A DNA stretch of 64,000 nucleotides from assembly GCA_965644295.1 (NCBI GenBank), contig CBFFRP010000318.1, forward strand, positions 25,404 to 89,403, read 5' to 3'. The DNA is from Paraphysomonas bandaiensis (taxonomy: Eukaryota; Protista; Chrysophyceae). Below are positions 1 through 28,338 of this stretch, one piece after another; within the stretch, counting starts at the first letter, position 1; each line of letters begins with the position of its first letter. A model generated the notes under the pieces. That model did no database searches. It was given only the letters and a program-made list of their open reading frames with translations, and was not told the DNA's origin. Both the position numbers and the translations under genes were made by a program.

Positions 1-3000
1 ATTTCAAAAATCCTGACACAGATCGGCACACGAATGAGTGTCTACTGGTAGCCACCGACGAGAAACTCTCAGCCGACTCGAAATCTTGCAGAGTATCTTC
101 TGTCATACCCACACCAACGCAATCAATAGTGAGGTCGCTCAAATTATTTTTCACCCATGCATAAATCCGCTCATACAACAGTTCAAACCTCTTATCTTCA
201 TCCAATACTAATTCACAATTGCTGTCTAGAGTTGCTTCAAGATCTGTGGTAGACTCACCACGGCCAAGCGGAGATGCCTTTGTGTCAAAAAAAGCCTTTA
301 GTAGCTGCCGAGATGCCTCATACGGTTCCAACACATTAGCCAAATGACATGAAACCAAAAACTGGGATTGGATAACCTGCTCGTTTCGTTGCAAAAATTC
401 CGTAATTACTTTCGTCTTACCAGTTCCTTTCCCACCAACAATAACACATTTATTGGATGGTAAAATACTTTTTTGTGACCCAGAAGTGGTATAGCATTCA
501 TCTAACATACAAACTTCTTGGGTGTCAGAGTTTTCAACGCCATTAATGTACAAACTGAATGATTTTTGAAGGATTGCCATCTCTTCATCACGACCCACAA
601 AACAACCCCCACGACGTCCAGTACTCAAGAGTGCAGCCACCTCTTCCACTGTTACATAGGCCTTCGGATTTTTCCGTAGGTGCTGGAGCGAGTACACCTG
701 AACAGGGGAGTCGTAGCCTTTTGCGTTCAACTTAGGGAGTTTATCGAATATGAAATCGCTATTCACGCCTAGATACACATCACAACTAACAATTATTTGA
801 CTGTTTCGACACAATCCCATCAGTCGTGCTGCGAGATTCACACTGGAACCCATCATACAGTACTCCTTTCGACTTGTGCTCCCGACATATCCACAGTAAA
901 CCATTCCCTTGGAGACTCCAATACGACACACAATGTCATGAGCCTGGAGTTTGTTGCGGATAAGCACTGAGGCATAAACCCCCCTTAGGTCATCAGAGAG
1001 AGAGCTAAATCCGGGCACTCCGAAGGAGCATATAACAACACAGCCCTTGTCGTCAACAACATACTGCCGCAGTGCCCCACCAAGCTTCTGGAGAACCACA
1101 AGAATCTCTTCAATAGCTTTCTGTGGTTTTTCTATTTCCCCTTTATCGAACTCGTCATCCAGATTCATTATCTGAATAAACATCGTCACCACTACTCTCA
1201 GCTCAGCTAAATGTCCTGACGAATTGTGTACAATTGCTCCACGAGCGGACTCATGAACATATCGCTCTAACATCTTCCGATACTCATCTGCACTAGAGGG
1301 GCTGAGCTTCGTCAAGTGTGGGCCACTCGGACGAAACTCTATGCTATGCAAGCGGGAAGATCCTGACTCACTACACGTCTCTGCCTGCGAACCACGTGTA
1401 CGAAATGTATCTTCCTCTTCGGAGAGCCTGTCGTCAAATTTGTGCACCGCGTCGCAGAAACGTTTTTTACATGTATTATCCAGAAAGTGGAAGCCTGTCG
1501 TATTCTCAAATTTTGATGAGGATATTGCATAATCTGAAGTAGTGCTTTTGGTACTACCCGTGTAGGTATTATGGGTATTGTCAATTACATCCCTTGCTGA
1601 CACAACGAACTTATCCGATGACGACGGGGATCCCGTCTGTCCACCCTTGAAGAATGAGAAAGCCGTAGATATAGACGTGGGGGTTACTCCTGTGCTTGAG
1701 TCTACTGATCCATCACAGCCAGAGCTGTCCCCTTCATTGTCAAAGAATACCTTCGCACTTCGCCTGGAAGGGGACAAATTCTCCAGTGTTTGCACGAATT
1801 GCATCGCCGTTGTGACTAATGACAAATTTCGCGACTTTGGTGATTCTGTACCTAAGATTTTGTGGGCTTTATGTACATATGTTATACGAAAAGACCCGTT
1901 CGGCAGAGCCTGTCCAGTGCAACTGTACTTGACATACTCGTAGGCTGATTTCGAAAGACACAACTCCCCTGTCTTTGCCGCCGACTCCGCAGTCGAGAGC
2001 TCTCGTAGCTGAGGACCAGCAATCAAAAACTCCATCCTGTTCTCATTTCCCAAAGACATGCAGTGCAATTCTCCAGCGCTCATACCACAGTGCAGACGAA
2101 GGCGTATCGTGTGTCCACCTACCATTTCCTCGTACCGTCCGCAGTTGTCATTGAGCATTTCCAACACGCACTTAGTGGCCTTGTAAACTACATTCTGGCG
2201 GGCAGTTTCATCAGTATTTATGGGAGCGGTCCACACGACAAGCACAGCATCACCACAGAACTTCACCACATCTCCCCCATGCTGCTTAAACTTTCCCAGT
2301 AAATAGGTGAAAAAATGGCTATATAAGAAAGCATTAAATAAGTAGTTCTAAGCGATAGAATTTCATTACTTGATGTGATGCTTTAATTGCTCCACACTCA
2401 GCTTAGACGACAGCTTTGTGAATCCGGATATATCCGCTAAAACAACAGCAGCAAACAGCTTCTCTGACCATGCAGTACACTCCTTGTTCTCTTGACTATA
2501 AAGATATACACATATATCAGTATATACACTCATATCAGTATACACACATATATCAGTATATATACATACACATCAGTATACACACATATATATATCAGTA
2601 TATACATACATATCAGTATATACACACATATCAGTATACACACATATATCAGTATATATACAGACATATATCAGTATACATACACTCATATCAGGTTATA
2701 CACACTCATATCAGTATATATACATACATATCAGTATACACACATATATATATCAGTATATACATACATATCAGTATATACACACATATCAGTATACACA
2801 CACACATGTCAGTATATATACAGACATATATCAGTATACATACACTCATATCAGGTTATACACACTCATATCAGTATATATACACATATCAGTATATATA
2901 CACACATATATCAGTGTACATACATATATCAGGATATACACACATATCAGTATATACACACAAACATATCAGGATATACACACATATATCAGTATATATA

Positions 3001-3707
3001 CGCACATATATCAGTATATATACACATATCAGTATACATATATATCAGTATATACACAAACATATCAGGATATACACACATATAAGTATACATATATATC
3101 AGTATATACACATATCAGTATACATATATATCAGAATATATACACACCCATATCAGGATATACACACTTATATCAGTATACATATATATCAGTATATACA
3201 CAAACATATCAGGATATACACACATATAGGTATACATATATATCAGAATATATACGCACATATATCAGTATATATACACATATAGGTATACATATATATC
3301 AGAATATATACGCACATATATCAGTATATATACACACATATCACTATATATACACATATCAGTATACATATATATCAGTATATACACAAACATATCAGGA
3401 TATACACACATATAAGTATACATATATATCAGTATATACACATATAAGTATACATATATATCAGAATATATACACACCCATATCAGGATATACACACACA
3501 TATCACTATATATACACATATCAGTATACACATATATCAGTATATACACTGGCGGGCTGTTTATCCCAATATTGATAGTTACCTTCGTTTGAGTAATAAT
3601 CGCTGGGTTATAGTAGGCGTAAGTGACCGATACTCAGTGACCAGCGCCACTGCAGAGTCTGATGTACACTCTGCAGTAGATACTCTCAGAGATGATTGAT
3701 CGCTCAT
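1..3707 (-). CDS. Soluble adenylate cyclase (ADCY10/sAC-like): tandem class III cyclase domains followed by a STAND-type P-loop NTPase; 3' end runs off the window
   Basis: Manual minus-strand translation gives AAVVLADISGFTKL, GGDVVKFCGDAVLVVW, LRQYVVDDKGCVVICSFGVP, GSSVNLAARLMG and Walker A VIVGGKGTGKT (~415-445). ATG at 3707; frame-consistent GT-AG introns at 3582-2496 and 2369-2319. It is absent from the ORF track because it has no stop inside the window. Confidence 0.88.
2500..3549. repeat. Degenerate ~18-22 bp minisatellite (TATCAGTATATACACACATA-like) filling intron 1 of the cyclase gene
   Basis: Dozens of TATCAG(T/G)ATA cores separated by (TA/CA)n; lies between the splice sites at 3582 and 2496. 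Confidence 0.92.
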
Positions 3708-3839
3708 CCCGGCTGCATGTTGATACCTTCTGTTACTTTAAACAAACAGAGAAAGAAGTGATGTTAACATATCACTCCATTGAGAGACTCTGATTTATTA
3801 TGGATGGCTCTATCAGATATATATGTATATGTATGTATG

Positions 3840-3871
<32 letters not shown>

Positions 3872-4557
3872 TATGATAATCCTGCCTATATACTATACAT
3901 ACATACATATCCATAGACATGTATACAGATATACATGCATATTACAGGGACGGACAACGTACTCCGTTTGTACACTTCTCTCTCTGTCCTCTAGTACGAC
4001 TTCAAGGAATACGACATATGCCTCCGAGGAACGCGGCATCGTACGCCAATCTTCTTGTAATTATGTAGGAATTCCTACGAAGTTATATACTCCATATAAG
4101 AACTCCTAGGAATTCTATATACCAGATATACCAACACATACATATACAGCGTATACGGTATACGTATACATAGATCATCATACGGCTACAGAGTAGTGTA
4201 TACTGTAATTGGCATGTATGCATATACATAGACGTATCTCTCCTCTATACTCCACAGCTCTAACTATGTATGTATGTATGTAGGTCTTGAGCATGATGTG
4301 TCTCCTCTTCACCAATTCACAAGCAGTACAACCATATCACAACCAACTAAATTATTTCAATGCAATCTTAGTCCCGATACTAGTATACAACAATACATTC
4401 TTTCCTTGCATTGGAATAGAAGTCATTCCACTGCTCGATCCAACGATTTGATTTGATTGACAAGCTATACATCTCACATCTCATCATTAACATCTGCTCA
4501 TAATAAAGACTTTAGAATCAGATATCACCAACACATTTATATCACCAACATTCATCG

Positions 4558-18479: not shown

Positions 18480-21400
18480 CTAAAGAATACCAACTGAATG
18501 CATTCGCTGGCTCAAGTACTCCCTGATATAATCATCTGAAAATTCGCCAGAATACATCTCCCGAACCACATGGAAACCGTCTTGGGCTGACTGCAAATAG
18601 TCGTCTCGGCTTTGCGCAAAATATTTCATACGATTCACATGCGGATGCTTGTAAGAGAATTCAAAATTATACACATTACGATGTGTGCCCGTTTCTGGAA
18701 CTCTCTGTGCAACTATGATATCGGCTTTGAAGCCATGATAGTAAACCAAGGTCAAAACTTTGTAGTCATCTCCAAGGCCATTATCATCTAATATCTGTTC
18801 TATGCATTTTCCAAAACTAGATATCCGCGAGTTTATGACTATGCTGTGCTCATTATCTGTTGCATATTGAATCGGCTCCAAGTGCATGACATTGCTCTGC
18901 AAGGAAGACATGGAGCGTTTAATAACTTCCACAATGTCTTGCGGGAGATCCTCTTCCTTCGTGAGAACGCAAGCCAACGACCTCCACACTTTAGTGGCTG
19001 AATTTCGTTGGGATACACAACACATATCGGTCGACTCAAGCAATGCGGATGTGCGATTAACCACGCCTCTGAGTAAATCAATTGACTTGGGGAAATCTTT
19101 CGACAAAAGTCCAAGCAGGCCTACGAGGGCATACGATAAATTCGCAGGAGTGTCCTGGTTATCAGATGCAGGAATAACCTCAAGTTTATCCACAAAAGCC
19201 TTTGCTTCAGGGTGGCAATGATGTAATCCTCCGAGGCCTGAAAGGGCCATCAACTCAACGTGCCTCGTTTCAGTAAGATACTTGTCAGTTATAGCCACCA
19301 ATAATTCCCTCACGTTATCGTCGTGACTGTACTTTGAGCGCAGCCCCAACAGCATCATACCCAAATACGTGTCGGAATAATCATCTACACGAGAGTGTTC
19401 TACAAGACGTCTAGCAGCAAGCATCATATCACTCACTTCTGGACAGTCCGATGTCATACTCCGTAGCCCGTACAACACATTCGCAATGTTCATGCACGAG
19501 AATTCGGATGTACACTCGTCAATCAACCTAAACAACTTTGATAGAGTCTGCCGTACCTCAACATAGTTACAGTTCATTCTACCTATACCGGTCATAATCA
19601 TGCTGATATTATCAGGTGCAAAAGGCGGTCGAGAGGGGTTCGAGTCAACGCGATTGATAATACCCAGCAAAACTGCACGAGAAGCTTTCGTTGAGCTCCC
19701 GCCTCGAGATAGCCCATGAAACGACAGTGCCATGTGCTGCTCATTGAAACACATGTCTGGGGATGCTTCGGATATCACATTCGCTAAGATTTTTAGAAGA
19801 TCCTGAATCTCTTCTGTCTGGCTATTCATACTTCGAATCCCGTATAACATACAAGCTATGGCAACACTATCGTTCACAGAACTGCCAGATATCTGAAGAA
19901 TTTTATCGTTCAGTGTGCGAACAATTTTCGATAGCACATCGCATTCAACAGACATATTATGTAATCCGTACATGGCCTTGCCGATAGCACTCATCGCCAA
20001 CTTATCAGTACTTCGAGACAAATGAAAGGACAATATTTTCAGAATATCCATCACATATTCACTGTCATTATTGAAATGTTGTAGACCGTAGAGGGCATTG
20101 CATATATGGATCCCTCTGCACACCTCACTTCCTTTGACCATACGAGGCCCACTGGCAAGATTTATATTACCATGAGAGTCTATGTCTGGTATTTTGCTTG
20201 CAACAACTTTCAGAGCCTCATGGGCTTCAGGACAATCGGAAGACATGCCATTCAAGCTATACACAACACGACAGAGCACGGTCCCGTCAAGCGTCGTCGG
20301 GGATTTGGATAGCTTGGTCGTAAGGCACTTGAGTAGCGCAACCGGTTCTGGTTGTTTGGAAGACATGTGTTGCAGACCAGAATAGGCCTGACTGACAAGT
20401 ACTTTCGAAAGTGGTCTACTGAAAGACCTTACCTTGTCGCAGAGTGTCGATATTAACTGCTTTTCTGGAAGTGATTGGCCAGTGATATGCTGCAGAGAGG
20501 ACAATGATGTGTACACCTGATTTCCATTCCAAGCATTCGGTAGACTTGTCTGTAGCTTTTTTGTGAGACATTCAACGACTTCATCACGATTCTCATCATT
20601 CTTGAACCGAGGCAGAAATTGCAGGGCAGCAACGCAATGAAAAATGTGCTTGGCGTGGCTTAAAGGTTTCTCCGAGTCCACTAATGATCGGAAGAGAGCC
20701 AGAACAATGCCTGGGATGGCTTCAGATGATATGTGCCTTAACTCTTTTATTTCCACAATCGCTCGTCCAATATCTTCAGTTGAGTTGATTGCATTTGTCA
20801 TTGTGAGACCTGCGTCTACCTTCTCCGCACATGCACTAAGAACAGCATCCACACCAGCACTGTTTGAACCATATGGAAGGGGTTTGGATATAGCTGCCAA
20901 AGATGAGAGAATGTATTTCACTTCTATGGGTGTAGCATCTACACTTTCTACAGTGTTAGCATTTAAGGCAGGCTTACTTCTCATGCAATGAGCTATTGTA
21001 TTCATCGCAATAGTAGCACATTCCTGTCGCACATCCATCGCCACCAATCCGTCCAGAGCACGTACACAAACACGAAACGGTATATTTTCAGGGATATTGG
21101 CAAAATCATGAGTGCATAGATTGTTCAAAATTGTCAATATCTCTCGGCCAGATGAGCTATGTGAGCCAATGTGACGGAGACCATTCAGGGCCTGTAAATA
21201 CTGAATATCAGTTATAGGAGTCGTCGAGCGCCGGAGAAGCCGTAATATATTATCTACAAGAATCTTTCCCTCTTTGTGCTCCGTTGATATCCAAGAGAGA
21301 CTGGACACTATACATGTGATGTCCTCAGCGCTAAGAGGCTCGTTACAGGCAGCAACATGAGGAGTAATGATTGCCAGCAACTCTCGCACAATCTCTTCAC

Positions 21401-22064
21401 GGGAAGACATACAACTTAGCCCAGAACAGAGCATTCCTACCATTTTCGCGCTCAGGGGCTTAACTGGGCAAGGTTTGTATATATCACATAGAACTGTGAG
21501 CAGATTCCTTACATCTTTATGAGAGCCATTAAACTTTCGCATTCCGTACATCGACATGCACATCTCCTCCGGGGTGCACACAAGTTGGCCAGAGTCTGAT
21601 ACTTTCTGATGTAATGTAGATATAAAATGACGAACTTCACTAGTATGACTACTCATACACTGCATGCCATAAAGCAGGCTGCATATTGACGTGCTATCTA
21701 ACGGGTAATCAATTTTTCGAAATGCATTTTCAAGGACACCAAGAAGAGCTCTGCAGTCAGAGCGCTCAATTTCTAAGCTCAATAAACCATTCCCTAACAA
21801 CACAACATCACTCGTCTCATGCATCAGATGCGTTCCTTTAGCAGATACGATAATATTCTGAACCTCTTCAGGGGAGAGAAGAGTTCTATTAATACCCGCA
21901 GTGCTCATTGTAGACAGCACTGGTACACACGCTTGTTGTCTATTTTTTGCCCCTTGTAAAGTATACGCAGATGAAGAAATCCTTCTAGAGGAAAATGAAC
22001 TCTCATGACTGTATTTTTTATATGATAAAAATCGATTTAATCGCAATTTTCGATGAGATAACAT
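18480..22064 (-). CDS. Alpha-solenoid ~40-aa repeat protein with C-terminal RAP-like domain; likely mitochondrial RNA-binding/processing factor
   Basis: Intronless 1194-aa ORF with an Arg/Ser-rich N-terminus. xLYGLxxMxSxxxEVxxLLxxL recurs at 40-41 aa spacing. The C-terminus GFKADIIV..YNFEF..HPH..SRDDYL..GFHVVR fits the RAP pattern. Confidence 0.75.
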   Translation of the reverse strand: MLSHRKLRLNRFLSYKKYSHESSFSSRRISSSAYTLQGAKNRQQACVPVLSTMSTAGINRTLLSPEEVQNIIVSAKGTHLMHETSDVVLLGNGLLSLEIERSDCRALLGVLENAFRKIDYPLDSTSICSLLYGMQCMSSHTSEVRHFISTLHQKVSDSGQLVCTPEEMCMSMYGMRKFNGSHKDVRNLLTVLCDIYKPCPVKPLSAKMVGMLCSGLSCMSSREEIVRELLAIITPHVAACNEPLSAEDITCIVSSLSWISTEHKEGKILVDNILRLLRRSTTPITDIQYLQALNGLRHIGSHSSSGREILTILNNLCTHDFANIPENIPFRVCVRALDGLVAMDVRQECATIAMNTIAHCMRSKPALNANTVESVDATPIEVKYILSSLAAISKPLPYGSNSAGVDAVLSACAEKVDAGLTMTNAINSTEDIGRAIVEIKELRHISSEAIPGIVLALFRSLVDSEKPLSHAKHIFHCVAALQFLPRFKNDENRDEVVECLTKKLQTSLPNAWNGNQVYTSLSSLQHITGQSLPEKQLISTLCDKVRSFSRPLSKVLVSQAYSGLQHMSSKQPEPVALLKCLTTKLSKSPTTLDGTVLCRVVYSLNGMSSDCPEAHEALKVVASKIPDIDSHGNINLASGPRMVKGSEVCRGIHICNALYGLQHFNNDSEYVMDILKILSFHLSRSTDKLAMSAIGKAMYGLHNMSVECDVLSKIVRTLNDKILQISGSSVNDSVAIACMLYGIRSMNSQTEEIQDLLKILANVISEASPDMCFNEQHMALSFHGLSRGGSSTKASRAVLLGIINRVDSNPSRPPFAPDNISMIMTGIGRMNCNYVEVRQTLSKLFRLIDECTSEFSCMNIANVLYGLRSMTSDCPEVSDMMLAARRLVEHSRVDDYSDTYLGMMLLGLRSKYSHDDNVRELLVAITDKYLTETRHVELMALSGLGGLHHCHPEAKAFVDKLEVIPASDNQDTPANLSYALVGLLGLLSKDFPKSIDLLRGVVNRTSALLESTDMCCVSQRNSATKVWRSLACVLTKEEDLPQDIVEVIKRSMSSLQSNVMHLEPIQYATDNEHSIVINSRISSFGKCIEQILDDNGLGDDYKVLTLVYYHGFKADIIVAQRVPETGTHRNVYNFEFSYKHPHVNRMKYFAQSRDDYLQSAQDGFHVVREMYSGEFSDDYIREYLSQRMHSVGIL

Positions 22065-23508
22065 GACGACAAATTACATATAGAAAGGGGAGGTATATGG
22101 GGCTTAAATCAACTCAAAATACTGTGTCTTATGCACTGTAATGATGAGATGAATGTGTGTGAGAAGATGAGTGTATTTACTGGAGAGATAATGAGAGTGT
22201 TGTGATTCTAGTGGGAGTTTGATGAATGCAGTGTGGTTACTGTGGATTGCTATGGAATCACCGCACACCGTACATACACTCTGTATGTATTCTACATAGT
22301 CATACATGCATACATCTACTATACCATCTACCTACATACCTACATACAGATATATATATGGGACCATCACCACCAGACAACAGGCACTATCTCGTGGTGC
22401 AGGGTACTCTAGTGTCTAAATCTAGGAAATCATAAAAATCTGGGTATTTTTAGGATTCAACTGTCCAAAAACTGCAAAAAAACAAAACGCTAACATATAG
22501 AAACACACGTTACAATATTCACACTGAAGAGTCTTGAGCTGATGCGTCCGTTGAGCGATATGATCCAGTGACCATTATGCATAGATCATGCATTGAGACA
22601 TGCATGAATATCTTGCTTCCCAACAAGTAATCAACACCACGGGGTGACTGTCATATATATAGTCACATGGACACATAAATCTGCACGTAAACGGCTGCAT
22701 AAACGCCTAAATCTATGCATACTATACACTATTTTATAGGGAAGATTGATATGGCTGCCTATTCTTGTCCTTATCACTCAACTGCCTCATCCTTCAAAAG
22801 TATCAACAGAATAAGGATTAAATATGTATCAATGCAGTGTATATATTGGTACTATTCTGAGGCCCAAATTCAGCTATGAATTAGTTTGATGTTTCTTCAC
22901 ACTCACAGTAGGAATTGATGATCAGCATACAAGAATGATCTGCTAATATCGATATATTAGTAGCCTCCGGCAAAAAGTAATAAGAATATAAGTTAGTTTG
23001 TATTTACTCCCACACAAGTAGGCCCCAGAATATTATTGGTGGCTTCTTGCTTGTAAGACTATATTAGTTGGGTGGTAGTACGATAGTGCATTCGATTTGT
23101 CGTTGGTCCGTATAGAGTATAAAACATGAAATAACGATAACATGTTATTTAGTTAGTAGTTAATTGGACCCCTAGGGGATATATATATCACCTAACTCAG
23201 CATCTCACCGTCTAGAATTTATTTAGAATCGCGCAAATATTTTCGAGGGGTTGGTCATGTGAACAAGCAAATGACCTAGACTTATAGCTTACTATTCGTG
23301 CCATGATAACTTTATAAGTCAAGAAATATAAGTCATGATTCAATTATTATTATTAAGAGGTATAACTAATAATTAATAGCAAGTTACTGTCGCCTGGACT
23401 TTGAAGTTTAACTGCGATTAGCCACTGTATATTTCTTTTGCTGCATACTACTCACAAATATTGGGCAAAATCCACGAATGATAAGCACGTAATGATGATG
23501 AAAGCAGA

Positions 23509-25209
23509 TCATCGCCTTCTAAGAGCGCCACTTGGGGTGTAGTCAGTCTTTCTGGGGCGCCCTCTGCCTCGATAAACAGTTCCAGTGCTACTGCGAGGGC
23601 AGATGGCGGGACTGCACCTCGGCTCTGCTATACTCATTCGGTTGATTCCTCCCATCATACCTGCCATAGGATCTTCCATCATACCTCCCATTGGACTCCC
23701 CATCATACCTCCCATAGGACTCCCCATCATACCTCCCATGCCCCCACCCATCTGCATCGCCAAAAGACGCAAAATATCACTCATTCCATTGTCCATGCGG
23801 CTATAATGCTGTGGACGATTCAACTGCTCACGCAGCTGTGCCGATTCTTTGTTAGCTGCCTCAATTTGACGCTGCATACTTTTAAGGTCATCTTTAATTT
23901 TAGCCACTTCTGCTTCCGATGCCCGAGCAGACGCCTCCGCCGCTTTTTTCTCCGCCTCCAGTACCTCGTTGGCCAAGTGTTTCGTGTGTAGCTCTTTCTG
24001 AGCAAGTTCAAGACTTGACTCCATACCTTCCAGCTTCTCACCCATGGCTTTTTTTTCCTCTAATCTCTCCACCATCTCCGTGACAATGCCATCTACCTGC
24101 TCACTGATTAAAGGGAGCAGCACGCCCATATCCTGGATTACACTCAAATTTTCTAGATCACTGGACCAAGCATGTAGCCGGGCAATCATGAACTGGATAA
24201 AATCGTAATAATGTTGATCCACCGCTACACAGCGCAACACCCGTAGACCCTCAATGACTTCCAGGAAGTGATGCACTTCTGGTTCAATTCTGCGGTGCTC
24301 AAAATTATCTCTGGCCGAGTGTTCAAGAGTGGACAGCAGTGCGCCTAGGGTATTGACAGCCTCCACAGACAGGCCGACATTGAGAGAGGTGGGGGGGATC
24401 TCCTGGAAGTCTTGAAATTTCTGAATGAGGCTCAAACGGTTGATCCGCTGGTGGGTACAGTCGGAGTAGCGGTCAAGTGGGTCGTAGAACTCACAGGTGC
24501 TTGCCAAATGAGCAAACAGCTCCGCCGCATTAGGTGAGTGCGAGAATTGCCCCGAAGCTACTGCTTCACCCATGAACTCTCTTAGCTCATCTAAAGTCCT
24601 ATCAGGAGGCACTCGGGTGACCAGCAAGAGGGAAGAGCGACTGTAGAAATCCGATCTAGCGCAAAATATGGTCTCGAGCAGATTCAAGGTCTCTCGCAGT
24701 CCTCTTGCGTGGTCTGACAACAAAGCATGGTAGTTAATAATAATGACAACACCCTTCACACTGCGGGCCTTCTGAGCCATTCTGGTGAGTGCATACATGT
24801 TTGTGATGTCGAATACCACTCCTCTGTTATCCATAAACCCAGGACAATCACAGTATGTTAGATTGACTGTCGGGTCTGAGCAGGACTCTGGGAAGGAAGT
24901 CTGGCTTTGAAAACCATGTCCAATTTCCATTATTGGATTGTCACAAGTGAAGCCTTTCTCCATAGAGTTCTTTACTTTAACTTCCCTCATTTGTTTACCC
25001 ATGAGATAGTTGACAAAAGTTGATTTCCCTGCACCAGTATTACCCACAATTAGAACCAAATCTTTACCGCTTCCTCGCTGTACAGCAGCTTCATCTGCTC
25101 TTGCAATACCAGACAGCAACTCTTTAACAGTTTCTTTCTCAATCTGTGGATATTCGGGAGAAGAACCTTCAGTGGATTTGACTGACTTTGTTTTCTTAAC
25201 ACTCTTCAT
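23509..25209 (-). CDS. AIG1/GIMAP-like TRAFAC GTPase A with helical/coiled-coil region, Met-Gly repeats and C-terminal AT-hook
   Basis: G1 GNTGAGKST, G2 IGHGFQSQT, G3 DCPGF; coiled coil; MGGMMGSP repeats; RGRGRPRK. Intronless. Confidence 0.85.
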   Translation of the reverse strand: MKSVKKTKSVKSTEGSSPEYPQIEKETVKELLSGIARADEAAVQRGSGKDLVLIVGNTGAGKSTFVNYLMGKQMREVKVKNSMEKGFTCDNPIMEIGHGFQSQTSFPESCSDPTVNLTYCDCPGFMDNRGVVFDITNMYALTRMAQKARSVKGVVIIINYHALLSDHARGLRETLNLLETIFCARSDFYSRSSLLLVTRVPPDRTLDELREFMGEAVASGQFSHSPNAAELFAHLASTCEFYDPLDRYSDCTHQRINRLSLIQKFQDFQEIPPTSLNVGLSVEAVNTLGALLSTLEHSARDNFEHRRIEPEVHHFLEVIEGLRVLRCVAVDQHYYDFIQFMIARLHAWSSDLENLSVIQDMGVLLPLISEQVDGIVTEMVERLEEKKAMGEKLEGMESSLELAQKELHTKHLANEVLEAEKKAAEASARASEAEVAKIKDDLKSMQRQIEAANKESAQLREQLNRPQHYSRMDNGMSDILRLLAMQMGGGMGGMMGSPMGGMMGSPMGGMMEDPMAGMMGGINRMSIAEPRCSPAICPRSSTGTVYRGRGRPRKTDYTPSGALRRR

Positions 25210-25562
25210 TGATATTTATGCTCTAAACTTCTTAAATATACTTGTAATAATGACTGATGTGATGATGCTTATATATGCCTATATACGGTCCCTGTTCTTG
25301 TCAACTTCTCGTAAAGATTCTGGACTTTCTTGTCCAGTTTGATCCCATTTTGGACAAAAAAATCCAGAAAAAATTCCAAAGAATAGTCCAATTTTGCCCT
25401 TTCTGGTCGAATAATCTCCACAGTACAGTACAGCATGTGTCCATAATATCCAGCCATAGCATAGTACTGTATCACTCTACCCCCTTCTTCATTAATTGAA
25501 TCCCATAATAATTAACATCATTGTCCTACATTCTCACTGTCATCACAACAACAATCAACAAC

Positions 25563-27074
25563 ATGTCCTTATCTGATAAGAATCCTGATGATTTCATTAA
25601 TGAACTATCGTCCCGCTTAAAGGATGTGGATACATACACAAAACAACAAGAAGATAACAAAGAAGTTGTTCTTATTATTGGAAATACTGGTGCAGGAAAG
25701 TCAACGTTTGCTAATTATATCATTGGCAAATCCATGCGTGAAGAGAAGGTCAAGGGATCCCTCGAGAAAGGAGTTGTGTGTGATGATCCTGTTATGGAAA
25801 TTGGGCATGGGTTTATCAGTAAAACAACATTCCCACACACACACTATGATCATCATAGTAGTTTAACATTCTGTGATTGTCCTGGTTTCTTAGATACACG
25901 TGATGCTCTATTCGATATTTCTAATGTATATGCCATGACAAAAGTTTCGAGATGTGCGAAATCAATCCGTGCTATAGTTGTGGTTCTTTCATATCACTCA
26001 CTGCTCACAGATCGTGCACGTGCAATTGCGGATACTTGCCGCATGCTGGAGACACTGTTTGGTAGAAGTAACTATTCAAGGCAGTTGCACTCTGTTGTGG
26101 TGCTGATCTCCAAAGCCCCTCCTTCTATGGATATCAGAGACATTCGGTCGTTTCTTCTGGAAGGTTCCGAGGCCTCATCGGCAGAAATACGCCATGTATT
26201 TTCTCGAGCTCAGCTTTGCGACCCCCTGGAGCGTGAACCCGGATCACCTCGCCGAGTCGAATTGCTAGACACCCTTCGCTCGTGTTCTCCATTGGAACCA
26301 CATGAATTCACTTTCTGTCTCGCTCCAGAGTCACTGGAACAACTGGAGTCTGCTGTGAGAGCCTGCAGGTGTTCCTTGGTTGGTGATAAACCCTTGAACA
26401 TTGACGCTCTTTTGAATGAGACTTTTCGGTCTTCTCTCTGTCGCCTACGAAATCTGCTGAATACCTTGGAGCTATTGGGAAGCCCGCAGGTTCTGGAAAT
26501 GCGTCAAGCAGTGGAGGAATCGATCGACCGCAGTATACGCCAATTGATACGGTCTAATAGTTGGAACCCCGACGACCAATTGCTTGCAAATATTGAGAAA
26601 CTAAAACAGCGGTATTCTTTCCTCGAAGAAGCAGTGAAGTTTATCGAGGATTACGCTCTCAACCAGCTGAGGCAGCAGGCCGCCGATCGCGCTCGTGAAG
26701 AGGCTTTGGCCAAGGAGCGTGAACGAATCGAGCGAGAGGCCGCTGAAGCAGAGAAACGGCACCAAGCAGCGTTGCGGGAACGTGAGGAGCAAGAGCGCCG
26801 AGAAGCTCAGATTCGAAGGCAGCGCGAGGAGGCTGAGCGAGAGCGGCAATTACGACAGCAGCAGCTGGAGGCAGCTCAACGGGAGCGACGGGAAGCAGAG
26901 GAACGAGCTCGGCGGCGATACCACCCTGGACATATCGTTCACATGCCTGTCATGACAGTGTTTGGCCCGATGTTCGCTTCTGTATATACGTGCTGCATGC
27001 GCGATAGTGACAGCCCTGGTTGTGCGTCTGGAGGTGGTCATCAGTCGATAAGAGTTAGTTATAGAACACTATGA
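25563..27074 (+). CDS. AIG1/GIMAP-like TRAFAC GTPase B with E/R-rich coiled coil and C-terminal Btk-type Zn-finger-like motif
   Basis: G1 GNTGAGKST, G2 IGHGFISKT, G3 DCPGF; charged helix; YHPG..x..YTCC..SPGC. First ATG at 25563 (the track start at 25521 is TTG). Intronless. Confidence 0.85.
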   Translation: MSLSDKNPDDFINELSSRLKDVDTYTKQQEDNKEVVLIIGNTGAGKSTFANYIIGKSMREEKVKGSLEKGVVCDDPVMEIGHGFISKTTFPHTHYDHHSSLTFCDCPGFLDTRDALFDISNVYAMTKVSRCAKSIRAIVVVLSYHSLLTDRARAIADTCRMLETLFGRSNYSRQLHSVVVLISKAPPSMDIRDIRSFLLEGSEASSAEIRHVFSRAQLCDPLEREPGSPRRVELLDTLRSCSPLEPHEFTFCLAPESLEQLESAVRACRCSLVGDKPLNIDALLNETFRSSLCRLRNLLNTLELLGSPQVLEMRQAVEESIDRSIRQLIRSNSWNPDDQLLANIEKLKQRYSFLEEAVKFIEDYALNQLRQQAADRAREEALAKERERIEREAAEAEKRHQAALREREEQERREAQIRRQREEAERERQLRQQQLEAAQRERREAEERARRRYHPGHIVHMPVMTVFGPMFASVYTCCMRDSDSPGCASGGGHQSIRVSYRTL

Positions 27075-27520
27075 AATAATGCCATAATATATGCTAAATA
27101 AGGGCTAGGGAACAGTATACCTGTAGTTTATAGTGAGTAAAACAAAGTTTTATCAGCTGAAACCTCGAAATTATGTCGAGATAACTAATGAAAACATGGT
27201 TATTTCGCTGATTTAAACTCACTTTATTATTACAGCATAAAAGTAACAGATATGATCATAACTCATTTAATGACAGGTTTGAAATAACGTTAATAATATT
27301 TAAATCCGACTAAACTGGAAGGCAATTTGTGTAAAATCCATACACTCCACAACACTTATTTCAAGAACAATTAATACCATGCTTTTCAACCGACAACGAC
27401 AATAAGAAACGAAAAGCTTAGACGACTTTGTCGGAAACAATTATGTTCGAGGAGCAGTAACTTTAGTACTCAGGGTCGGCCCAGGGAGAAGTCTCATAGA
27501 AATTATAGGAAACGAGCCCC

Positions 27521-27860
27521 TCATGCTGACCCCTTGACCACTAAAACGTCACCATTAGGGATGTATAGAGTACCCTGACCGTGTTTCATCCCTTCTCTCC
27601 ACTCTCCATCATATGTCATGCTTGTGCCACTAAATAAAACTTCCCTTTGCCTGTTCGCAGACATGAAGCTCTCATGGAATAGCAGAGCAAGGAACTCACC
27701 ATCAGGAAATCTTTCATGTAGTGATAGTGAGGAGAATAGCTGATGGAATAACGGATTCCATGATCTTTGAGCTTCTGGTCTTTTCGCAGTTGCAAATAAA
27801 TGTATACTGATTACAAATCCTCCATACTGTCTCATAGCATCCATATATATATCCATACTC
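27521..27860 (-). pseudogene. Short MORN-repeat fragment (truncated gene or pseudogene)
   Basis: TYDGEWREGMKHGQGTLYIPNGDV is a canonical single MORN repeat, followed soon after by a stop. Confidence 0.5.
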
Positions 27861-28338
27861 ACATATCCTCCTGTAGCTAGACTGCTATTGCTTATGATCA
27901 TAGCTAACCCTACACAGTATATACGTACAGTATACGGTATACCTCTACCCACATAGACGTAGCTAGGCTTTGTTATTGCTTTCTATTGGTATACGTCATA
28001 TACAGCAGAGTACTACGTACCGCCGTCCTCATGTACTTGTCAAAAGTTCACTGCGATAGGATACCTATGCATACAGTATACAGGACTACTCGTACAGCAG
28101 TATACATATGTTCAATGATACATACAGCAGTACACTCCACACCTACACGGCATACATAAAGTACCTACACCCCACAGCTACACGCACATATTCTTCTACT
28201 TAGGCCCATATGATCATACACACACCTCACATACTCACATAGTTATCCCACTCACATACATACACATCTATCTCCCATTAATCTATCTAACCTCATGTTA
28301 ATCCCCTCCCCCTCTCCCCTCCTATAACCCCTCTCATA

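Follow-up and report, generated by a model that had tools for sequence, protein, structure and literature searches.

A conserved head-to-head pair of paralogous GTPase-like genes from an unnamed protist family in the chrysophyte Paraphysomonas bandaiensis

Among the GIMAP/AIG1 (IAN) GTPases, which include GIMAP7, GIMAP2 and GIMAP4, paralogues lie in gene clusters and are known to form heteromers. GIMAP7 stimulates GIMAP2, and among the Toc GTPases Toc34 carries a C-terminal membrane anchor. A GIMAP6-GIMAP7 complex has been reported (PMC9111091) and, according to the titles of their Protein Data Bank (PDB) entries, the paralogous GTPases Toc33 and Toc159 cooperate as G-domain dimers with an interface arginine, the title of 2j3e adding that dimerization matters for Toc33/Toc159 GTPase activity. 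Effectors of the bacterium Amoebophilus carry a GTPase domain related to GIMAP/AIG1 (PMC3417536). Here we describe two paralogous genes, A and B, that lie head to head on either side of a short spacer in a 64,000-nucleotide stretch of Paraphysomonas bandaiensis DNA (contig CBFFRP010000318.1, positions 25,404 to 89,403; hereafter the window, from whose first letter all positions are counted). We assign a probability of roughly one half to the reading that A and B arose by an old inverted duplication and were kept together, forming a dimerizing pair of GTPases without a canonical G4 motif that divide the tail functions between them and work jointly. We found no paper describing such a head-to-head arrangement of GTPases.

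The products of A and B resemble the GIMAP/AIG1 proteins in the DxPG-F-D form of switch II, in helical extensions that follow the G domain and in variable C-terminal tails, but share only 13-16% identity with them, do not reach the Pfam AIG1 model and lack the aspartate of G4. Moreover, their family has invariants of its own (Asn after the P-loop, IGH, Cys in DCPGF and Arg in DxR), together with a conserved N-terminal helix and a helical domain of ~120 residues within a 350-residue module. Toc33/34 and Toc159 match the model of A similarly well in fold (Z 12.9; Foldseek E 1e-5), but their tails differ, no family membership is seen at the sequence level, and neither A nor B shows signs of being targeted to plastids or anchored by a transmembrane segment. 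The IRG (p47) and GBP proteins, in which the G domain is likewise flanked by helical domains, are lower-ranking fold matches to A with a similar P-loop context (family profile to IRGB10, E 3e-4); the sequence match is nevertheless confined to the P-loop, the helical domain is a different one, and A and B show neither expansion nor diversifying selection. GIMAP-related GTPase domains also occur in effector-like proteins of Amoebophilus and of chlamydiae, and the module of the present family was found in genomes of Amoebophilaceae, Chlamydiota and other intracellular bacteria; the bacterial family proteins measure about 1100-1200 aa and include other unannotated regions. Finally, plant sensor/helper NLR pairs consist, like A and B, of two divergent paralogous NTPases with a shared promoter. 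This is an analogy of layout only: NLRs are STAND ATPases, another class of NTPase, and A and B have no integrated decoy or effector domain.

Divergent transcription and conservation of the gene pair

The coding sequence of gene A occupies positions 23509..25209 on the minus strand (stop codon included; 566 aa) and that of gene B positions 25563..27074 on the plus strand (stop codon included; 503 aa). For B, the open reading frame (ORF) spans 25521-27074 (+), but TTG 25521 is a start only for the ORF tool; the first ATG lies at 25563 and matches the start of a public 503-aa protein (P0001) of identical length. RNA evidence came from contigs of two polyA metatranscriptome runs (one sample) and two culture-type runs placed on 22900-27700, a type of evidence that can neither rank expression levels nor demonstrate co-regulation. 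Joint-free contigs cover A from ~23330 to 25239, while contigs over B begin at 25510-25585 and extend onward; in none of the four runs did a contig lie over 25240-25509 (~270 bp), and no joints were reported. This cover of A and of B, with a gap between them and no joints, indicates two separate, divergent and intronless transcripts. The 3' untranslated region (UTR) of A extends over 23330..23508 on the minus strand, where RNA contigs start at 23329-23394 and poly(T) loose ends before 23329 and 23333 (runs X8 and X10) mark the polyA site of the minus-strand mRNA near 23330. At the other end of the locus, a 2.3-kb contig of B in the culture-type runs X8 and X10 runs on past 27699, and the polyA metatranscriptome contigs end at 27118-27276; the longer contig could mean that the 3' UTR of B is long or that its transcript overlaps a convergent one, for example that of a minus-strand ORF at 27521-27952.

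An initial annotation of the locus had reported two intronless ORFs diverging from a spacer of ~350 bp, and this description was borne out. The shared intergenic region (25210..25562) measures 353 bp from ATG to ATG, and the ~270-bp gap within it presumably acts as a bidirectional promoter. Between orthologous genes the spacer is likewise short (about 80-490 bp) and not alignable, and an alignment of four orthologous pairs yielded no convincing common motif. A scan of the spacer for promoters and terminators was uninformative, its models being bacterial and the host a eukaryote. The paralogy and common G motifs claimed for the two genes also held, as BLASTP aligned A with B at 32% identity over 422 residues (E 2e-65), a likeness far beyond chance, with near-identity in the blocks of the P-loop, IGH and DCPGF.

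The head-to-head layout was found to be kept in relatives, at six related metagenomic places, five of which were verified by sequence. The orthologous A gene is 73-79% identical to that of the window at L001 (where B is 62% identical), 69-70% at L002, 69% at L063, 56% at L060/L061 and 42% at L007, whose B is ~40% identical in the G domain. On the contig of P0090 (A 44%), the layout was read from gene calls only, and the gene that diverges from A encodes a fragment of 127 aa with GTPase matches. Across all orthologues, the identity of A thus descends from 73-79% (L001) to about 40%. A metagenome scan with the alignment of A returned, in its table, relatives at ≤36% identity only and no new A/B pairs. 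At L002, B is present twice in tandem: the two copies (1036-2496 and 2609-4069 on a TARA contig) are in direct orientation and encode identical 486-aa products, the result of a very recent duplication or else of an artefact in the assembly. Related GTPase genes also occur in other arrangements, namely, as same-strand tandem pairs at L009 (467-2212 and 2243-4393) and L010 (4001-5068 and 6110-6811), with 36-42% identity to A, and as two adjacent A-type genes, judged by gene numbering, in a EukProt genome (P0173/P0174). The two genes of L009 have in common an extra N-terminal domain of ~130 residues and of unknown kind, and a gene resembling leucine-rich repeat (LRR) proteins adjoins them.

In a maximum-likelihood tree of 85 core sequences, the A and B orthologues formed one clade against the other 75 (SH-aLRT 100); the tree was a quick run and supports this clade but not the branching order within it. 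The branches of B were much longer, with a length of 1.36 for the one leading to the B clade and of 2.61 for that of the L007 B. Comparison of the window with L001 gave ratios of nonsynonymous to synonymous substitution (dN/dS) of 0.09 for A and 0.20 for B, rough values at a saturated dS of ~1.5, with the highest ratio (about 0.37) in the helical domain of B. Both genes are thus under purifying selection, and by this sequence estimate the evolutionary rate of B is about twice that of A, while the catalytic motifs (P-loop, switch and DxPG) are invariant and intact in both. Within the host genome, the family comprises A, B and one remote third member on contig C159, with no expansion. This third member (L005, C159:88776-92249, with the match at C159:90276-90749) has the P-loop GLSGSGKST and the motif DMPGLNDNRG, and its match sits in an open frame of 833 aa whose C-terminal part, rich in Gly and Pro, resembles collagen (GNPGSPGNPGG...).

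Fold of the G domain and membership of an unnamed family

Sequence searches placed A and B only loosely. In the Pfam scan, MMR_HSR1 was matched weakly (28.6 and 25.0 bits), the remaining matches were generic for P-loops, and AIG1 (PF04548) was not reached (13.5 bits for A and 19.4 for B, against a gathering cut-off of 27). An NCBIfam scan of the whole of A and B gave nothing meaningful, and a search of PDB sequences with A alone gave matches at the level of the P-loop only. A family profile run against the same sequences found GIMAP4, IRGB10, septins, GIMAP7 and Toc33, in each case through the P-loop region only (E 3e-4 to 1e-3). We obtained an AlphaFold2 (AF2) model of residues 20-380 of A from an 84-sequence alignment, with a predicted local distance difference test (pLDDT) score of 91.5 and a predicted template modelling (pTM) score of 0.88. 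Foldseek ranked GIMAP7 first among PDB structures (E 1e-6), followed by GIMAP1, Toc34, GIMAP5, GIMAP2 and Toc33, with GBPs, IRGs and mitofusins further down. A second aligner, VIA, likewise put GIMAP7 on top (Z 13.9 over residues 30-309, which include the helices that follow the G domain), ahead of GIMAP4 (13.6), EngB (13.4) and Toc33 (12.9); other TRAFAC GTPases scored 11-12.8 (RagD 12.8), so the margin in favour of GIMAP is small. Named neighbours in the atlas were AIG1/MMR_HSR1 clusters. The term AIG1-like, used in the initial annotation, therefore holds for the fold of the G domain, whose nearest relatives are GIMAP/AIG1 and Toc, but not as membership of the Pfam family, whose cut-off is not reached, and the Z margin behind it is thin (13.9 versus 11-13.4).

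The G domain of A covers residues 46-260 (24430..25074, minus strand), as delimited by alignments, the AF2 model and the fold matches with GIMAP7/4 and Toc33/34. It contains the P-loop GNTGAGKST (56-64), an IGH/S/T switch region (94-104) and DCPGFMDNRG (121-130) with the family-invariant Arg129. The conserved module of ~350 residues continues into a helical domain at residues 261-385 (24055..24429, minus strand), with model helices at 263-360. For B, a column-by-column comparison and the AF2 model set the G domain at residues 31-235 (25653..26267, plus strand), with the P-loop at 40-48 and DCPGFLDTRD at 105-114, which includes the invariant Arg113; the helical domain that follows (residues 236-351; 26268..26615, plus strand) is the fastest-evolving folded part. 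Two changes adjoin this Arg, N112T, found only in B, and G114D, present in three of four B orthologues. At the G4 position, A reads TRVP and B reads SKAP, in agreement with a family pattern T/S-x-x-P in which Pro is ~93% conserved. The guanine-reading Asp of (N/T)KxD, by which GTPases are recognized at G4, is absent from both proteins.

To delimit the family, we ran a profile of 358 positions, spanning the N-terminal helix, the G domain and the helical domain, on a collection of 1.84 billion representative proteins. At E<=1e-3 it matched 5833 of them, a number that fell to 3596 at E<=1e-10 and to 600 at E<=1e-30, and A and B themselves match it over its full length with all invariant columns kept. 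Hundreds of proteins are covered over profile positions 3-356, and the module occurs in proteins of 290 to 2500 residues. Invariant throughout are the P-loop GNTGAGKST followed by Asn, IGH..S.T..P, DCPGF.D.R and the Pro at G4. Long members combine the module with ankyrin repeats, LRRs and EF-hands (P0010), with HEAT repeats (P0037) or with ankyrin repeats and a patatin phospholipase (P0018). A Chlamydiota bacterium contributes one member, an NCBI protein, and in a scan of bacterial and archaeal genomes the specifically named matches were mostly obligate intracellular associates of protists. The module was found in Amoebophilaceae, Chlamydiota (including a Dictyostelium symbiont), Caedibacter, Odyssella, Finniella, Coxiellaceae and Rickettsiales (L018-L058), and also in unclassified Gamma- and Alphaproteobacteria, other Bacteroidota and Cytophagales, and Bacteriovoracia. 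Among these matches, two records of Clostridioides difficile and a single Heimdallarchaeota bin look out of place. Two large bacterial members (1178 and 1086 aa) showed no Pfam domain at E<=1e-4. The bacterial copies fit the remark on Amoebophilus effectors in PMC3417536, which may refer to members of this same family.

A and B thus belong to a protist-wide family that has no Pfam model, name, solved structure or tested member and that forms a separate family inside the GIMAP/Toc/septin-like (TRAFAC P-loop GTPase) group. Its fusions and its uptake by intracellular bacteria suggest a role in scaffolding at membranes or organelles, or in cell-autonomous defence, rather than in ribosome biogenesis. 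We considered an identity as ribosome-biogenesis GTPases (MMR_HSR1, EngB) and rejected it, as the matches are weak and neither the architectures nor the taxonomic spread fit. Public annotations of four members (P0002, P0090, P0170 and P0172) as 'EcfA2', the ATP-binding protein of an energy-coupling factor transporter, or as 'EngB' are misannotations based on the P-loop. Another member, P0181 (663 aa), joins MORN repeats to the GTPase module and is present in two identical copies ~29 kb apart (L064 and L065) on a 434,601-bp contig that also bears the A orthologue P0067. Next to each copy are genes for reverse transcriptase and integrase of the Ty3/gypsy type, an arrangement that resembles a segmental duplication associated with a retroelement, and a lipase_3-GTPase gene lies nearby.

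Different C-terminal tails of A and B

Beyond the common module, the two proteins carry tails with the composition that had initially been noted, namely, a coiled coil, a Met/Gly-rich segment and RGRGRPRK (547-554) in A, and an E/R helix followed by a His/Cys motif in B. The coiled coil of A (residues 386-475; 23785..24054, minus strand) has a hydrophobic fraction of 0.65 at heptad positions a and d and is kept in orthologues. It is followed by a low-complexity region (23581..23784, minus strand) with a Met/Gly-rich part at residues ~485-521 and a Cys-x5-Cys motif, CSPAICPR, at 532-539; the Gly/Met-rich character is seen in all A orthologues and CSPAICPR only in the window and L001. The protein ends in a basic, AT-hook-like tail, TVYRGRGRPRK..., at residues 544-566 (23512..23580, minus strand).

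The identification of this tail as an AT-hook was weakened by closer comparison. Its core scored 13.8 bits against PF02178, below the Pfam cut-off of 17.4, and the GRP core is limited to the window, L001 and L060/61, being absent from L059, P0067, P0090, P0148, L008 and P0175. In an alignment of the tails (A8), the corresponding segments read YRGPRGG-YY....GNKRYV in L059 and P0175, GKRGGVYEKK... in P0067, and YTRSNGT.V..YYRKSRK in P0148, L008 and P0173/4, and the AT-hook-like motif of the window is positionally equivalent to the GPRGG-YY basic tails of the more distant orthologues. The tails of L059 and P0175 weakly matched PF08789, a basic adaptor domain specific to Paramecium bursaria chlorella virus (PBCV), with 16.4 bits (E 0.0099) and 14.7 bits, respectively, against a cut-off of 20.4; the Pfam scan gave no match to this family for the A tails of the window and L060. 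In PBCV-1, two kinases with this basic adaptor domain are among the virion DNA-associated proteins (PMC3281028). From these comparisons, the 'AT-hook' of the window reads as a local variant of an older, short and basic tail module. Binding of polyanions by such a tail is plausible from its composition, while specific sensing of AT-rich DNA by A is not supported.

An immune role had been put forward for the locus, in which A and B would be a sensor/helper pair, with A recognizing AT-rich viral DNA by its AT-hook and signalling together with B. Several observations would suit such a role: the nearest folds include the immunity-associated GIMAP, IRG and GBP GTPases; the family is fused to LRR, ankyrin and patatin domains; its copies in intracellular bacteria of protists are what would be expected from mimicry of a host defence or trafficking factor (PMC3417536); and the tail of A is basic, with related tails that weakly resemble a domain found in two chlorovirus virion DNA-associated proteins (PMC3281028). 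Nevertheless, we consider this role unlikely. The GRP core occurs in three close lineages only and stays under the Pfam cut-off, and each genome has one copy of each gene, with no lineage-specific expansion. Furthermore, the genes are under purifying selection (dN/dS 0.09 and 0.20), with no diversifying selection at this resolution and no obvious arms race, and their expression in ordinary polyA metatranscriptomes and in culture runs is not visibly dependent on infection. Neither protein has an effector domain, and PADLOC returned only P-loop and coiled-coil noise (LmuB, DndD and JetC).

The tail of B is built differently. Residues 352-450 (26616..26912, plus strand) were modelled by AF2 as one long helix rich in Glu and Arg, with pLDDT values that are mostly 84-96 by block but fall to 76 at 431-440 and 51 at 441-450. 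Over residues 366-452, the segment contains 28% Arg, 25% Glu (53% for both) and 18% Ala, with 24 of 83 i/i+4 pairs being of opposite charge and a heptad hydrophobicity of 0.44. This composition, the number of charge pairs and the missing hydrophobic seam are those of ER/K single alpha-helices, and the helix is probably a stiff spacer of this type rather than a coiled coil. The remainder of the tail (26913..27071, plus strand) holds YHPGH, a hydrophobic stretch with FGPMF, TCCM and SPGC (residues 453-487) and then a Gly/Ser-rich end. A CC-x8/9-C pattern is present in four of six B orthologues, and FGP...CC...P-x-C in L001, L002 and L007. The tails of L060 and L062 have no Cys motif and end in a short hydrophobic peptide, and all six B tails terminate in a hydrophobic or aromatic peptide.

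The His/Cys motif had been taken for a Btk-type zinc finger, a proposal that our comparisons do not support. In a Pfam scan, the B tails from the window, L001 and L002 matched neither the Btk model (PF00779) nor any other family at E<=10, although the HMMER filters may hide very weak matches. Btk-type fingers have a His-to-CC spacing of 10. In the tail of the window this spacing is 22 residues, and it appears shorter in L007; no PH domain is present. The motif is also missing in two of six orthologues, and AF2 gave a low-confidence hairpin at residues 457-476 (pLDDT 42-61). A word search with residues 440-503 found B itself only, a result of little weight given that the method needs common words of five residues. 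Zinc binding, S-acylation and membrane insertion are all possible for a peptide of this composition. In one further reading, B would be a membrane-anchored, receptor-like GTPase comparable with Toc34 or GIMAP1/5 and A its soluble client, the Cys cluster being a site of S-acylation and not a zinc ligand. The ends of the six orthologous tails, all hydrophobic or aromatic and four of them with a Cys motif, would agree with an anchor, as would the most hydrophobic 19-residue stretch of the window protein (461-479, Kyte-Doolittle 1.34), which leads directly into CC, and the E/R helix would serve as spacer. However, this stretch is short, interrupted by Gly-Pro and under the usual transmembrane threshold, and its predicted form is the low-confidence hairpin. 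We consider an anchored receptor improbable.

Joint action of A and B

In the reading that we favour, A and B are read outward from a single short promoter region. Each protein would start with a helix, continue with its G domain and helical domain, and extend into a long C-terminal helix by which a small tail module is kept at a distance from the body. By analogy with GIMAP7/GIMAP2 and Toc33/Toc159, both could act as nucleotide-dependent dimers across the G interface, in which the invariant Arg of DCPGFxDxR may be the interface or catalytic arginine; the changes peculiar to B lie next to that Arg. The conserved pairing and the asymmetric rates together suggest that A and B work together, and a slow A and a fast B would do so most simply as a heterodimer. 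To this core, A would add its coiled coil and, after a flexible linker of Met and Gly, a basic tail with a putative affinity for polyanions (DNA, RNA or acidic lipid), and B would add a predicted single E/R helix of ~15 nm ending in a hydrophobic, Cys-rich peptide that could bind membrane, carry lipid groups or bind metal.

We evaluated the association by structure prediction of a complex between the cores of A and B. The interface score (ipSAE) was 0.51, compared with 0.00 for the best control, which the tool rates as 'weak support'. For comparison, 51 of 78 solved complexes and 2 of 108 mismatched pairs attain the mark, and scores of 0.60 or under comprise 5 of the 78 solved complexes together with all four mismatches that passed (of 180). 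The runs agreed in at least 90% of contacts, with a partner pLDDT of at least 77. The prediction shifts the odds for binding slightly. Of the co-regulated heteromeric module that the initial annotation had proposed, divergent transcription in the same samples stands, but the heteromer was overstated.

Several points weigh against joint action. The complex score is weak, does not discriminate between a heterodimer and homodimers, and may echo solved dimers of GIMAP, Toc or septin proteins. The Asp of NKxD is absent, so that specificity for GTP is itself unproven, and the tail functions are drawn from composition, with a low-confidence model for the tail of B. Moreover, no B lies within 6 kb of A at L006 (A 52-58%) or in the 2 kb upstream of A at L008 (A about 40%; 39.6% by tblastn), which indicates that A can exist without a neighbouring B; at L059, the upstream DNA is too short to judge pairing. 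A 543-aa gene upstream at L006 was considered as a diverged B and ruled out (hhalign probability 0.1). Adjacency could also persist merely because an inverted duplicate shares its promoter. An account of this kind would make A and B independent paralogues, born of an inverted tandem duplication, with tails that have since diverged and each protein acting as a homodimer or monomer, the layout being kept by promoters interleaved in a spacer of 80-490 bp. It draws on the frequency of local duplication whatever the orientation (the tandem genes of L009 and L010 and the adjacent P0173/P0174), on the renewed duplication of B in L002, on the A genes that lack an adjacent B and on the weak complex prediction, and we regard it as possible, if rather doubtful. 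What it accounts for less well is the survival of the head-to-head layout while A diverged to ~42% identity and synonymous sites became saturated (dS ~1.5 to the nearest relative). The tails and rates, which differ consistently in every lineage seen, also fit a division of labour better than drift.

A bolder version of joint action, confined to diatoms and related lineages, would have A and B couple a nucleic-acid body (virus, nucleoid or organelle) to a membrane by GTP-dependent heterodimerization through the arginine of switch II. B would be fixed to the membrane, or hold metal, through its Cys-rich end and carry its G domain on a single-helix ruler of ~15 nm, and A would bind nucleic acid by a tail that descends from the basic adaptor domain, which is otherwise a feature of chloroviruses. 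We consider this coupling very unlikely; if true, it would constitute a new kind of GIMAP-like heterodimer and a domain common to host and giant virus.

Elsewhere in the window, the neighbouring gene at 18480-22064 (minus strand, 1194 aa) matched no Pfam family at E<=0.1. The host genome (62.6 Mb in 669 contigs) contains several silicon-transporter genes over the Pfam cut-off.

Taken together, these results correct automatic 'EcfA2' and 'EngB' annotations and make the pair a handle on a very large GTPase family, with at least 600 divergent clusters, that is fused to signalling and lipase domains and has repeatedly been taken up by obligate intracellular bacteria of protists. As a conserved, minimal and intronless pair in a culturable alga, A and B offer a practical entry to the nucleotide use of this family, to its type of dimer and to the process that the bacterial copies imitate.

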